Sequence record: OZ196212.1
Reading direction: 5' to 3' (one strand)
Length of the DNA: 64,000 nt
In this document: piece by piece, positions 8,274-44,218 of the stretch
Layout: the number at the start of each line of letters is the position of its first letter
Position numbering within the stretch: position 1 is the stretch's first letter
Translations under genes and position numbers: made by a program
Notes under the pieces: model-generated
Database searches by the model: none
The model's input: the letters and a program-made list of their open reading frames with translations, nothing else
What the model was told of the DNA's origin: nothing

Positions 8274-9815
8274 ATGAACCTAACTGAAAAATGGAAAGAC
8301 TTGCTTGAGGCAGACGGCGCGGAAATGCCAGAGATTGCAACTGCAACTAAGCAAAAAATCATGTCGAAAATCTTTGAAAACCAAGATCGTGACATCAACC
8401 AAGATCCAATGTATCGTGATCCACAACTTGTAGAAGCTTTCAACGCTGGTCTTAACGAAGCAGTAGTAGATGGCGACCACGGTTCTGTAGCGAACATCGC
8501 AAGCGGTCAAACAACTGGTGCTGTAACAAACATCGGTCCTACTGTAATGGGTATGGTTCGTCGTGCAATCCCTCAACTTATCGCTTTCGATATTGCGGGT
8601 GTTCAACCGATGACTGGTCCAACTAGCCAAGTGTTCACACTTCGTTCAGTTTACGGTAAAGATCCTCTTACTGGTAAAGAAGCATTCCACCCTGTTCATC
8701 AGGCTGACAGCTCTTTCTCTGGTCAAGGTGCTGCATCAACAATCGCTGATCTTCCAACAGACGCGACAGTAGTTTCTACTCCGTACAAAGCGACTGTTAC
8801 AACAGATGGCGGTACTGACGACCTACGTCACTTCCTAGCTCTAACTACAGACGCTGTAGTAGCAAGCTCAGGTGTGATGACTGCTGCTGAATACCAAGCA
8901 CTTGTAATCGGTGGTAAACTGGTTGAAGTTGACGCTGGTATGGCAACAAGCCAAGCAGAACTACAAGAGAACTTCAACGGTTCAAGCGGTAACGAATGGA
9001 ACGAAATGTCATTCCGTATCGACAAGCAAGTTGTTGAAGCGAAATCTCGTCAATTGAAAGCTCAATACTCTATCGAGCTTGCTCAAGATTTACGTGCTGT
9101 ACACGGTCTTGATGCTGACGCTGAACTAAGCGGCATTCTTGCTAACGAAGTTATGGTTGAGCTTAACCGCGAAATCGTTAACCTAGTTAACTCTCAAGCG
9201 CAAATCGGTAAGTCTGGTTGGACTAAAGGTGCAGGCGCTGCGGGTGTATTCGATTTCAGCGATGCAACAGACGTTAAAGGCGCTCGTTGGGCTGGTGAAG
9301 CTTACAAAGCTCTATTGATCCAAATCGAAAAAGAAGCAAACGAAATCGGTCGTCAAACTGGTCGTGGTAACGGTAACTTCATCATTGCATCACGCAACGT
9401 AGTTTCTGCACTTTCAATGACTGATACTCTAGTTGGCCCTGCTGCGCAAGGTCTACAAGATGGCTCTATGAATACTGAAACAAATCAAACTGTTTTCGCG
9501 GGTATTCTAGGCGGTCGCTTCAAAGTGTACATTGACCAGTACGCAGTGAATGACTACTTCACAGTAGGCTTCAAAGGCGGTACTGAAATGGACGCGGGTG
9601 TGTTCTACTCACCGTACGTACCTCTGACTCCACTACGTGGTTCAGACAGCAAAAACTTCCAACCTGTAATTGGTTTCAAAACTCGTTACGGCGTTCAAGT
9701 TAACCCGTTTGCTGATCCAGATGCGACAGTAGACAAAATTGGTTCAGGTGCTCCAGTAGCTGCATCAATGGGTAAAAACTCTTACTTCCGTCGCGTATTC
9801 GTGAGCGGTCTGTAA
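8274..9815 (+). CDS. gp23: Major capsid protein
   Basis: GMVRRAIPQLIAFDIAGVQPMTGPT, EAKSRQLKAQYSIELAQDLRAVHG, FYSPYVPL, KTRYG; gp21 cleavage site LNE|AVVDGDHG. Confidence 0.98.
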   Translation: MNLTEKWKDLLEADGAEMPEIATATKQKIMSKIFENQDRDINQDPMYRDPQLVEAFNAGLNEAVVDGDHGSVANIASGQTTGAVTNIGPTVMGMVRRAIPQLIAFDIAGVQPMTGPTSQVFTLRSVYGKDPLTGKEAFHPVHQADSSFSGQGAASTIADLPTDATVVSTPYKATVTTDGGTDDLRHFLALTTDAVVASSGVMTAAEYQALVIGGKLVEVDAGMATSQAELQENFNGSSGNEWNEMSFRIDKQVVEAKSRQLKAQYSIELAQDLRAVHGLDADAELSGILANEVMVELNREIVNLVNSQAQIGKSGWTKGAGAAGVFDFSDATDVKGARWAGEAYKALLIQIEKEANEIGRQTGRGNGNFIIASRNVVSALSMTDTLVGPAAQGLQDGSMNTETNQTVFAGILGGRFKVYIDQYAVNDYFTVGFKGGTEMDAGVFYSPYVPLTPLRGSDSKNFQPVIGFKTRYGVQVNPFADPDATVDKIGSGAPVAASMGKNSYFRRVFVSGL

Positions 9816-40863: not shown

Positions 40864-40911
40864 TGCATGAACATCTAAATACAGGCATGTATTAAAAATG
40901 GTGTTCATGCA
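40864..40911 (+). promoter_or_regulatory. Late promoter TCTAAATA inside an RBS-sequestering hairpin
   Basis: TGCATGAACATC (40864-40875) pairs with GGTGTTCATGCA (40900-40911); inner AATACA/TGTATT stem with GGCA loop; TCTAAATA at 40874-40881. Confidence 0.72.
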
Positions 40912-40913
40912 CT

Positions 40914-41762: not shown

Positions 41763-42584
41763 TTGAACATTAAAGATAGAATAGAAGAGCTAATCGGCTC
41801 GGTTCACAACTGCACTACCAAAGATGGTGTATGTGAAATCGAAAAGCTGTACGCTCAGAAGAAAAAAGAACTAGGTGCGAACATTACTCCTATGATGGAC
41901 ATCCGCGTGCGCGATGCAATTCGTGGTAAGTGCGATATGTTCGACGCTGAAGCTGCTGAACGCGAAGAAGCAAAGCAAGTGAAAGAAACTGAAGCTGCGG
42001 CTGCTGCAATTGCGGGTAAATTCGACGAGGGTTTGCATCACACGACCGAGAAAGAGTTTTTCTTGCACGAGACTGTGATTGATGAATCAGCGATTGATGC
42101 AATGTGTATCATGGACGTTGACGGCAGTATCCCAACGAACGGACACAAAGAGCTGAGTAAATCGCTTGCTGAGGCGTGTGATCACGTTAACGCGCAAGGT
42201 CGAATCTTTGTACCAGAAGAAGCAAACAAGCTGTTGAGCATTAACGAGCGCGTTGAAATCATCGAATCGTTCTCTGACGTTGACGTTGTTCCGAAAGGCG
42301 TGATGTTTGCTGAAGTTGAACAGTTGATCGAGCGCGACATTACTCGCGTGTTTGCATTCGTTGAATCTGACAAAGTAGCTGAATATCGTCGTCTGGGTAA
42401 ACACTTCTTGCGTTCTGGTGGTCGTCGCTTCGAGATCGTTGAAATCAAGAACAAAGTACCATCGAACATCGTTGAGAATTTGATTCGCGATGACAGTCTA
42501 GAAGAGTTTTTCGAGCAGATGCCGATGCCAATGAACGAAGCTGAGAAGATCTTTGATCGTCAGCTTGAACGTCTATTGGGGTAA
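41763..42584 (+). CDS. Hypothetical protein (273 aa)
   Basis: Long ORF with SD GAGGAG, TTG start, coupled in the same operon. Confidence 0.75.
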   Translation: MNIKDRIEELIGSVHNCTTKDGVCEIEKLYAQKKKELGANITPMMDIRVRDAIRGKCDMFDAEAAEREEAKQVKETEAAAAAIAGKFDEGLHHTTEKEFFLHETVIDESAIDAMCIMDVDGSIPTNGHKELSKSLAEACDHVNAQGRIFVPEEANKLLSINERVEIIESFSDVDVVPKGVMFAEVEQLIERDITRVFAFVESDKVAEYRRLGKHFLRSGGRRFEIVEIKNKVPSNIVENLIRDDSLEEFFEQMPMPMNEAEKIFDRQLERLLG

Positions 42585-42587
42585 TCT

Positions 42588-43073
42588 ATGGCAGACACAG
42601 CTAAACGAGGCGCAGACGGCTTTTATGCACTGCGTTTGTCTACTCTGTTACACATGCCGTTTCAGAAATGGGACGCGTATAAGCGTGGTATCATTGATAA
42701 AGATGGTAAAAAGCTGCGTGACGCTGAATCTAGCGAGAAAGGTTCGTGGACTATGTTTCACGTGACTGTAGCTAACATCAAGAAAATGGTGAACATGCTA
42801 CCGGGTGGTCGTACTGCATTAGATTACGGTGCGTCATATCTGTTGATGATTGAAATCAAAGATCACTACAATTTAAGTGACGAGTTCATTAATGAACTGC
42901 GTTCGCTTGAAGAATCAATGGTCGCGGGTGATGCAGGTGATGGAAGTGGCTCGGCAGAGTCGATTGCGACTGGTGAAACTACTGGTGCAATCACGAACGC
43001 AGGTGCGGGAGCAACTGCAAAGCCGAAGAAGAAAAAGAAGAAAAAGCTGAAGAAATTCAGACATTTCGACTAA
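42588..43073 (+). CDS. 61.1: gp61.1-like protein (161 aa)
   Basis: PF.KWDAYK.GIIDKDG domain of T4-like phages plus tail MVAGDAG..IATGETTGAITN.G..KKKK like T4 61.1; just upstream of gene 61. Confidence 0.72.
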   Translation: MADTAKRGADGFYALRLSTLLHMPFQKWDAYKRGIIDKDGKKLRDAESSEKGSWTMFHVTVANIKKMVNMLPGGRTALDYGASYLLMIEIKDHYNLSDEFINELRSLEESMVAGDAGDGSGSAESIATGETTGAITNAGAGATAKPKKKKKKKLKKFRHFD

Positions 43074-43076
43074 AAT

Positions 43077-43098
43077 AGGGGCGTTTTCGCCCCTTTTT
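43077..43098 (+). terminator. Rho-independent terminator
   Basis: AGGGGCG-TTTT-CGCCCCT-TTTT. Confidence 0.85.
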
Positions 43099-43100
43099 AA

Positions 43101-43131
43101 TGTTTAACGTTCGTGAAACTCGTGTGATAAT
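43101..43131 (+). promoter_or_regulatory. TGTTTAAC-N17-GATAAT promoter (primase)
   Basis: Box 43101-43108, TG-extended GATAAT at 43126-43131. Confidence 0.7.
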
Positions 43132-43150
43132 GCTCACAAGAGGATATATT

Positions 43151-44218
43151 ATGCAAATACTGATTGATATACAATACGCAAAAATGCTACAGCACCGATT
43201 GTTATTACCAAAAGTACATAGTAATCGTCCCTTCAAAATAAATGCTCGTTGTCCCGTATGCGGTGACTCGAAAAAGAACAAATACAAGACTCGTTTTTGG
43301 ATCAATGAAGTGAAGACAAAATCTGGTGAAGTTCATCTTCGCTGTAGTTGTTGGAACTGTGATTTGAATGTGTCGTTGTTTCAGTTTCTGAAAGATCACG
43401 AGCCGTCATTATTCTCACAATATCGTGTTGATCTGTTCAAAGAGAGGAATTCCCGTGAAAGAAAGGAAAGACCGCCTGAACCTGTTAAAGAGAATGCAGC
43501 AAATGCAGCGCCTGTTGTCGTTGAGAAAGAGCAAGAAGAGCAGCTTTTCCACAACATCACCGCGCTAAAAGAAGGTCACGTACTGCACAAGTATCTAGAC
43601 TCGCGCAAAATCCCACATGATAAATGGCATCTACTCGGCTTTACTCGTGGGTGGTCACAGATGGCGAAGACATTACGCCCCGATTTATATGAAGGCGAGA
43701 TTCGTCAAGATCACCCGCGGCTGGTAATACCGATATACAACAAAGATGGGTTGGTAGCAGTGCAAGGTCGTGCTTTGACTAACAAGCACGCGCAGCGTTA
43801 CATGACCATCAAAATCGACGACGATTTCAACAAAATCTACGGTACTGAGCGAATCAATGAAGACGACGACGTTATTTTCGTTGAGGGCCCAATTGATAGT
43901 TTATTTCTATACAATTGTTGTGCTATCGTAGGGGGACAAGTAAGTCCGCAGAACGCACCATACGCGGGACATCGCATATGGGCACTTGATAATGAACCGC
44001 GACATCCCGATGTAGTGAAGCGTATGCAGTCACTTATCAAAGCAGGTGAGCGCGTAGTTATCTGGGATAAACTCCCGCCTGTAATTGCAGGCAAGAAAGA
44101 TATTAACGACTTCGTGAAAGCGGGCGTTAATGCTGAGTTCATTCAGCAATACATTTATGACAACGCAGTAAGCGGCTTGATCGCTACTAATAGATTAAAC
44201 AGATGGAAGAAAATTTAA
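43151..44218 (+). CDS. gp61: DNA primase
   Basis: RCPVCGDS...CWNC zinc finger, RLVIP, QGRAL, VEGPIDSLF TOPRIM, LDNEPR, KDIND; ATG 43151 (SD GAGG). Confidence 0.96.
   Translation: MQILIDIQYAKMLQHRLLLPKVHSNRPFKINARCPVCGDSKKNKYKTRFWINEVKTKSGEVHLRCSCWNCDLNVSLFQFLKDHEPSLFSQYRVDLFKERNSRERKERPPEPVKENAANAAPVVVEKEQEEQLFHNITALKEGHVLHKYLDSRKIPHDKWHLLGFTRGWSQMAKTLRPDLYEGEIRQDHPRLVIPIYNKDGLVAVQGRALTNKHAQRYMTIKIDDDFNKIYGTERINEDDDVIFVEGPIDSLFLYNCCAIVGGQVSPQNAPYAGHRIWALDNEPRHPDVVKRMQSLIKAGERVVIWDKLPPVIAGKKDINDFVKAGVNAEFIQQYIYDNAVSGLIATNRLNRWKKI

Follow-up and report, generated by a model that had tools for sequence, protein, structure and literature searches.

Head assembly in bacteriophage T4 is among the best-studied assembly pathways, yet gene 61.1, which lies directly upstream of primase gene 61, is still described as 'hypothetical'. 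In the literature searched, 'gp61.1' was found in gene lists only, and no link of 61.1 to a targeting leader or to the N-fist of the major capsid protein gp23 was found. Besides T4 gp61.1 itself, the closest described systems are the internal proteins of the head and the N-terminal region of gp23. The internal-protein leader is a capsid targeting sequence, in which positions 4 and 7 matter most by mutagenesis (PMC9026906). IPI, IPII and IPIII all carry such a leader, ending in I/V-x-E, and follow a common route: they load on the core, are cut by the prohead protease gp21 and stay with the DNA as basic, folded products. In T4 gp23, the N-fist comprises residues 66-91 (PMC7136217). The N-terminal region of gp23 up to residue 105 lies inside the unexpanded prohead, where it is disordered and probably contacts the gp22 core; it is also where the head-length mutations A66D, A94V and G97S are located (PMC9546572). 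During expansion, this region swings outward to become the N-arm and N-fist and helps form the Soc site (PMC9546572, PMC9958956, PMC7136217). Each T4 N-fist touches four subunits; gp24 has a formed N-arm and no N-fist, and the N-fists of five portal-distal gp23 subunits are disordered (PMC9958956, PMC7136217).

The window analysed here, a stretch of 64,000 nt (OZ196212.1), matches Vibrio phage D484 (OZ195935.1), a KVP40-like relative of T4. The features discussed below are the following; coordinates are those of the window except in the last line.

42588-43073, plus strand: long-form gp61.1 gene, an open frame of 161 aa plus stop
42588-42902, plus strand: N-domain, residues 1 to about 105, helical (AF2 model, phrog_18642)
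42906-42914, plus strand: L107-E108-E109, predicted gp21-type L/I-x-E prohead-protease site, with the cut expected after E109
42915-43004, plus strand: N-fist-like core, residues 110-139, paralogue of gp23 residues 63-88 (BLASTP, hhalign)
43020-43055, plus strand: oligo-lysine run K145-K156, read from the sequence, standing where gp23 has M-V-R-R
43077-43094, plus strand: terminator-like hairpin directly after the gene, 7 pairs (6 of them G-C) followed by a T run
8274-9815: gp23 gene of this phage, 513 aa
8451-8537, plus strand: original segment in gp23, residues 60-88, comprising the L-N-E maturation site and the N-fist (BLASTP)
L005:3967-4131, minus strand: T4 gp61.1 (NP_049649, 'hypothetical protein', phrog_1823), 54 aa

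The product of the frame at 42588-43073 is 100% identical to the annotated CDS VPHD484_0053 of Vibrio phage D484. It matches phrog_2086 over residues 3-154 (E 2.9e-44); residues 108-153 match phrog_1823, the 54-aa T4-type family (E 4.6e-12), and the N-domain matches phrog_18642 over residues 6-103 (E 1.4e-18). A Pfam scan of the 161-aa product returned no family at E<=0.1, PF07068 (Gp23) included. The primase gene (43100-44218) stands directly downstream of the end of the frame on the same strand, an order identical to that in T4, and a gene with a UvsW.1 domain lies upstream, separated by a gap of 3 bases. The hairpin at 43077-43094 is terminator-like and probably acts as a strong terminator that closes the transcription unit after the 61.1-type gene. 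Right after it, at 43101-43131 and ahead of the primase gene, TGTTTAAC is followed by an extended -10 element (TG-n-GATAAT), an arrangement that is promoter-like.

The C-terminal part of the D484 protein resembles the start of mature gp23. Residues 107-139 align with residues 60-88 of the phage's own gp23 at 17 identical positions of 33 (BLASTP, E 5e-6), and a profile comparison of tails with gp23 N-termini from 15 T4-type genomes gave a probability of 98.5% and E 3.8e-15 over 35 columns (hhalign), with an alignment that starts at the L-x-E triplet and stops at G-P-x-V-x-G. At the DNA level, a degenerate pattern encoding I-A-x-G-x-T-T-G-A has two hits in the window, with 0.00 expected; a looser core pattern has exactly two hits in the complete D484 record and two in T4, and in both genomes one falls in gene 23 and the other in 61.1. 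In each of the 15 T4-type tails, the conserved core is preceded at a constant register by a triplet of the form [LIVMF]-x-E, and a G-D pair at +5,+6 in the tails matches gp23. Downstream of the shared stretch, gp23 continues with M-V-R-R-A-I-P, whereas the tails turn into a lysine/arginine run, oligo-lysine in D484. Such a basic run follows the motif in every T4-type tail sampled (26/26), the median length past the cut site being 52 aa. The residue after the predicted cut is variable in the tails (S, A, D, E or M) and is Ala at all T4 internal-protein sites. The two D484 copies, in the tail and in gp23, have 63% DNA identity and share the third codon base at 8 of the 17 identical residues; because synonymous sites are scrambled to this extent, the likeness is old and is kept by selection on the protein rather than being the result of recent copying.

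These alignments make the tail a genuine paralogue of the N-terminal end of mature gp23, and from a gp21-type L-x-E site onwards the two keep a common register. In terms of the known structure, it is homologous to the gp23 N-fist/N-arm (PDB 6UZC, PMC9958956) from L-x-E through G-P-x-V-x-G and has the same predicted N-terminus; unlike gp23, it is not joined to an HK97-fold body, and the N-fist segment by the maturation site is the only part that the D484 protein shares with gp23. In T4 numbering, the copied segment corresponds to gp23 residues 63 to about 97, that is, the Glu65/Ala66 site, the N-fist and the first N-arm residues. Mimicry of the Gol/Lit region of gp23 was considered and set aside, since that region presumably lies downstream of the point where the likeness stops. 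When PDB sequences were searched with the whole product by phmmer, all matches were noise and gp23 was not among them. A start inside the frame at Met111, which would give the tail alone, was considered and rejected, since close relatives have Val there and gp23 has Ile/Val. The preliminary description had called the protein gp61.1-like and had read its tail, with a poly-Lys end, as a mimic of the mature N-arm of the capsid protein. The identity agrees with the PHROG match and with the position adjoining the primase gene, the resemblance to gp23 is confirmed by both alignments with the sequences as quoted there, and the lysines are those of K145-K156. What needs narrowing is the extent of the mimicry: an N-terminal segment of gp23 is indeed copied, consisting of the N-fist and the first N-arm residues and not of the whole N-arm.

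T4 gp61.1 has the same peptide as the D484 protein, with M-V-A-G-D, the I-A/S-x-G-x-T-x-G-A core, G-P and a lysine run after the cut site, and the two differ in what precedes it. In T4, this is a 10-residue internal-protein-type leader, MKTFKEFIKE, ending in I-K-E, whereas D484 has a 105-residue folded domain that begins M-A-D-T-A-K-R and does not fit the leader pattern M-K-T-Y/F-Q/K-E-F. In the T4 genome, that pattern is found only in ipI, ipII, ipIII and 61.1; 61.1 and ipI agree in all of their first 22 nt, and leader residues 4 and 7 are both kept in 61.1. Klebsiella phage PKO111 (Jiaodavirus) likewise has a 54-residue short form, whose leader equals its own IPII leader at 9/10 residues, and the short form of a Krischvirus carries a different leader. 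Short forms, in which the tail is kept and the N-domain lost, thus occur in Tequatrovirus, Jiaodavirus and Krischvirus, and long forms in Mosigvirus (ST0), Pseudotevenvirus, RB43, and Acinetobacter, Aeromonas and Vibrio phages. The T4 61.1 peptide matches 1,389 phage records, long forms included. Across these architectures, the peptide is, on sequence comparison, the constant part, to which the N-domain and the targeting leader provide alternative N-termini. With this, 61.1 emerges as the fourth T4 gene with a head-targeting leader, and one that copies the capsid segment where head-length mutations map; because the T4 peptide follows an internal-protein loading leader, the 61.1 product is probably an overlooked small head-internal peptide. 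The statement in the preliminary description that T4 61.1 is this peptide alone behind a capsid-targeting leader proved correct, since the product has 54 aa and shares its leader with ipI-III, and the conservation of the motif among homologues, on which that description had made its reading depend, is evident from the 1,389 matching records.

To compare tails with capsid proteins more broadly, every tail was scored against every gp23 N-terminus from 27 genomes in a matrix of alignment scores. The mean score of T4-type tails is 76.6 with T4-type gp23 and falls to 22.8 with the short 'cyano-type' gp23 N-termini. For the tails of D484, Aeh1 and phiM12, which represent three divergent lineages, the phage's own gp23 is the best-scoring match. 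The tail of phiM12 gives the clearest example: it has T-N-T-G-N-I and P-V-L in common with its own divergent gp23, scoring 46 against it compared with 30 or less elsewhere. The tail of Stenotrophomonas phage DLP_6 has A-P-T-N in common with its own gp23. Own-versus-other permutation gave p values of 0.004 (T4-type) and 0.02 (cyano-type), neither of them corrected for shared ancestry. The marine 'cyano-type' tails, taken as a group, do not score significantly better against their gp23 (mean local score 22.5, compared with 22.8-23.5 across types), and their likeness to gp23 is confined to a short A-P-x-N stretch; the claim of covariation is therefore limited to the lineages named. Within that limit, the scores are suggestive of coupled evolution of tail and gp23.

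The D484 gene is best explained as encoding a pro-protein of two modules that represents the ancestral long form of T4 gp61.1. The first module, residues 1 to about 105, is modelled as a compact helical domain; the second, residues 110-161, is paralogous to the initial ~35 residues of mature gp23 and runs into an oligo-lysine tail. An L-x-E site in the register of the gp23 maturation site joins the two. We hold with moderate confidence that its product is a prohead-loaded, gp21-released basic peptide paralogous to the gp23 N-fist. Under this proposal, the pro-protein would be taken up by the assembling prohead, gp21 would cut it after Glu109, and a basic peptide of ~52 residues would be left within the head. 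The N-fist-like part may bind whatever partner the still-internal gp23 N-termini have, either the scaffold core or the inner shell, the lysine tail may bind packaged DNA in the manner of the T4 internal proteins, and the N-domain would do the targeting job of T4's 10-residue leader. This is in essence the route of IPI, IPII and IPIII, with the differences that these have the leader that D484 lacks and that their mature products are folded, whereas the D484 product is predicted to be a short disordered copy of a capsid segment. The main reason for thinking prohead entry and gp21 cleavage likely is that the constant peptide has the N-domain and the targeting leader as alternative N-termini. If correct, the proposal names a function for a tail module present in over a thousand phage genomes.

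Several observations count against a prohead-loaded, gp21-released peptide: D484 is without an internal-protein-type leader, the residue after the predicted cut is variable, and an exact late promoter is absent upstream. No virion mass-spectrometry match for a gp61.1 product was found in the literature, and the virion table of Morganella phage MP1 contains no identifiable 61.1 homologue. The tail is also dispensable, because it is missing from some phages whose gp23 bears an N-fist, such as Pseudomonas phage Milchi, which has the N-domain alone. With regard to timing, no exact TATAAATA late promoter is present within 11 kb upstream of the D484 gene, although a TCTAAATA variant occurs near 40866-40912, and the gene sits among an early replication-type cluster. 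No exact late promoter is found near T4 61.1, nor directly upstream of ipI. T4 omics tables assign the RNA class 'early' to 61.1, ipI, ipII and ipIII alike, and the gp61.1 protein was not quantified in that study (PMC9697503 supplement). Since the RNAs of the three internal proteins are also 'early', early transcription is no obstacle to reading 61.1 as a head peptide.

The same transcription data bear on a different reading, which we regard as unlikely, namely that the protein is a non-structural early one, with an N-domain acting in replication or takeover and a tail that mimics the gp23 N-terminus in the cytoplasm. Possible targets of such a tail include, for example, gp21, the GroEL/gp31 folding route or a host sensor of capsid protein. 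The N-terminus of gp23 plays a role in the GroEL/gp31 folding route. The gene does lie beside or a few genes from the primase gene in D484, T4, RB43, MIZ3, phiM12, DLP_6 and Milchi, but this synteny is weak evidence because gene order in the replication modules of T4-like phages is conserved generally. The early RNA class in T4 and the absence of a nearby late promoter would also fit, but the internal-protein genes are likewise 'early' at the RNA level. A non-structural role leaves unexplained both why the short forms bear the head-targeting leader found on the internal proteins of the phage they belong to and why every tail has an in-register protease-type site.

Within a head-based framework, the freed N-fist copy might act in trans on the capsid, filling N-fist docking sites at the gp24 and portal vertices or competing with gp23 N-termini for the scaffold core, which is quite unlikely in our assessment; under this reading, competition for the core would help set head length or the timing of expansion. 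If true, this would add a class of capsid accessory that had gone unrecognised, in which a peptide is paralogous to one arm of the major capsid protein and evolves in step with that protein, and any action of the peptide on lattice or scaffold would bear on the control of prolate head length and expansion. The more specific form, which was the main idea of the preliminary description and in which the freed copy docks on the expanded shell at gp24 pentons or the portal and stabilises the junctions there, we consider very unlikely. It would account for a predicted peptide start that is exactly equivalent to the mature gp23 N-terminus and for some tracking of own gp23 by the tails, and vacant positions are available where gp24 is without an N-fist and where five portal-distal N-fists are disordered (PMC9958956, PMC7136217). 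However, in the mature shell the N-fist is on the outside, which it reaches while tethered to gp23, whereas a free, internal, lysine-tailed peptide would have to exit the head and find its site, and unassigned density was not found reported in papers on the high-resolution T4 maps. Action as a protease decoy and tethering of DNA to the shell, both raised in the preliminary description, are likewise hypothetical roles.

To a reading in which the tail is an address label we give a slim chance. Here the tail would bind the scaffold core and bring the N-domain into the head as cargo, and gp21 would then free the N-domain. That the N-domain is the most conserved and widespread part of the family agrees with such a role (2,320 cluster representatives at E<=0.001 in a profile search, often with other C-termini), as does the view that the N-terminal region of gp23 touches the core (PMC9546572). 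The short forms of Tequatrovirus, Jiaodavirus and Krischvirus, however, keep the tail without the N-domain, so that in T4 and PKO111 one label would carry another with nothing to deliver, and still the short form is found repeatedly in these genera. Finally, that the tail is a functionless fossil, a captured and drifting fragment of gene 23, would suit its predicted disorder and its absence from some lineages but is close to refuted by conservation of the protein over Vibrio, Aeromonas, Acinetobacter and enterobacterial phages despite scrambled synonymous sites, and by the cut-site register and basic run kept in all 26 T4-type tails sampled.

The N-domain belongs to a large phage family with no known fold and is a target of interest in itself. 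An AF2 model built with 60 sequences has pLDDT above 90 over residues 10-70 and places helices at residues 2-22, 56-70, 74-94 and 98-114, whereas the N-fist-like stretch is disordered, with pLDDT below 50. No usable match to the N-domain came from fold searches (Foldseek on the PDB, E above 3; peak Z of 4.5 in the VIA wide search), a BFVD search returned uncharacterised family members only, and the ESM Atlas gave nothing but unnamed viral clusters, with a score of 0.84. The tail is carried by at least 65 of the 167 family members sampled, counted by a strict pattern. In Pelagibacter phage HTVC008M, Melnitz and many marine contigs, the N-domain is combined with an unrelated C-terminal domain of ~95 residues, and other layouts of the family include inserts ahead of the tail and further domains past it. 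Pfam scans of ten longer family members identified no informative fusion partner except DUF5824.

Homologues of the D484 protein are named '(putative) major capsid protein' or 'capsid protein' in Acinetobacter phage Minot, Citrobacter phage Maroon and Erwinia phage Cronus, in Klebsiella phages Miro and KaAlpha, and in the UniRef and NCBI names for the family members P0006 and P0009. This naming is a recurring mis-annotation that evidently stems from the N-fist-like stretch. It is contradicted by the negative results for fold and Pfam families: the AF2 model consists of a helical domain and a disordered tail with no HK97-type fold, and no capsid protein was among the fold matches. The present analysis corrects it.

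Some family members continue beyond the tail. In P0149 (587 aa), the tail is followed by ~400 more residues, including a D-G-H-H-R-W stretch, in P0038 (342 aa) by DUF5824, and in P0036/P0155 (about 250 aa) by an uncharacterised domain of ~100 residues. In some phages, then, cargo can be attached to the cut product. P0018 (121 aa), from an 820-nt metagenome contig, has an Acinetobacter-phage-type tail after V-Y-E on an unrelated N-terminus, which may represent a domain swap or an assembly chimera.

Further observations concern the neighbourhood of the gene and the record as a whole. The upstream gene (41763-42584), named 'DNA helicase' in public records, encodes a fusion in which a UvsW.1 domain (PF11637, E 1.5e-28, residues 14-69) is followed by some 200 C-terminal residues that match UPF0102 weakly (E 0.0016). 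The gp23 motif (8496-8521) has the same coordinate in the window and in OZ195935.1, and the 61.1 motif (42963-42988) is shifted by 65 bases. The two sequences are thus not co-linear throughout, which points either to a near-identical isolate or to a 65-base indel between the gp23 and 61.1 genes. A second PF07068 match in OZ195935.1, at 65026-65892 (L003/L004) just past the end of the window, presumably marks the gp24 vertex protein; it comprises two PF07068 hits in a 303-aa frame, compared with 420-437 aa in other T4-like phages.
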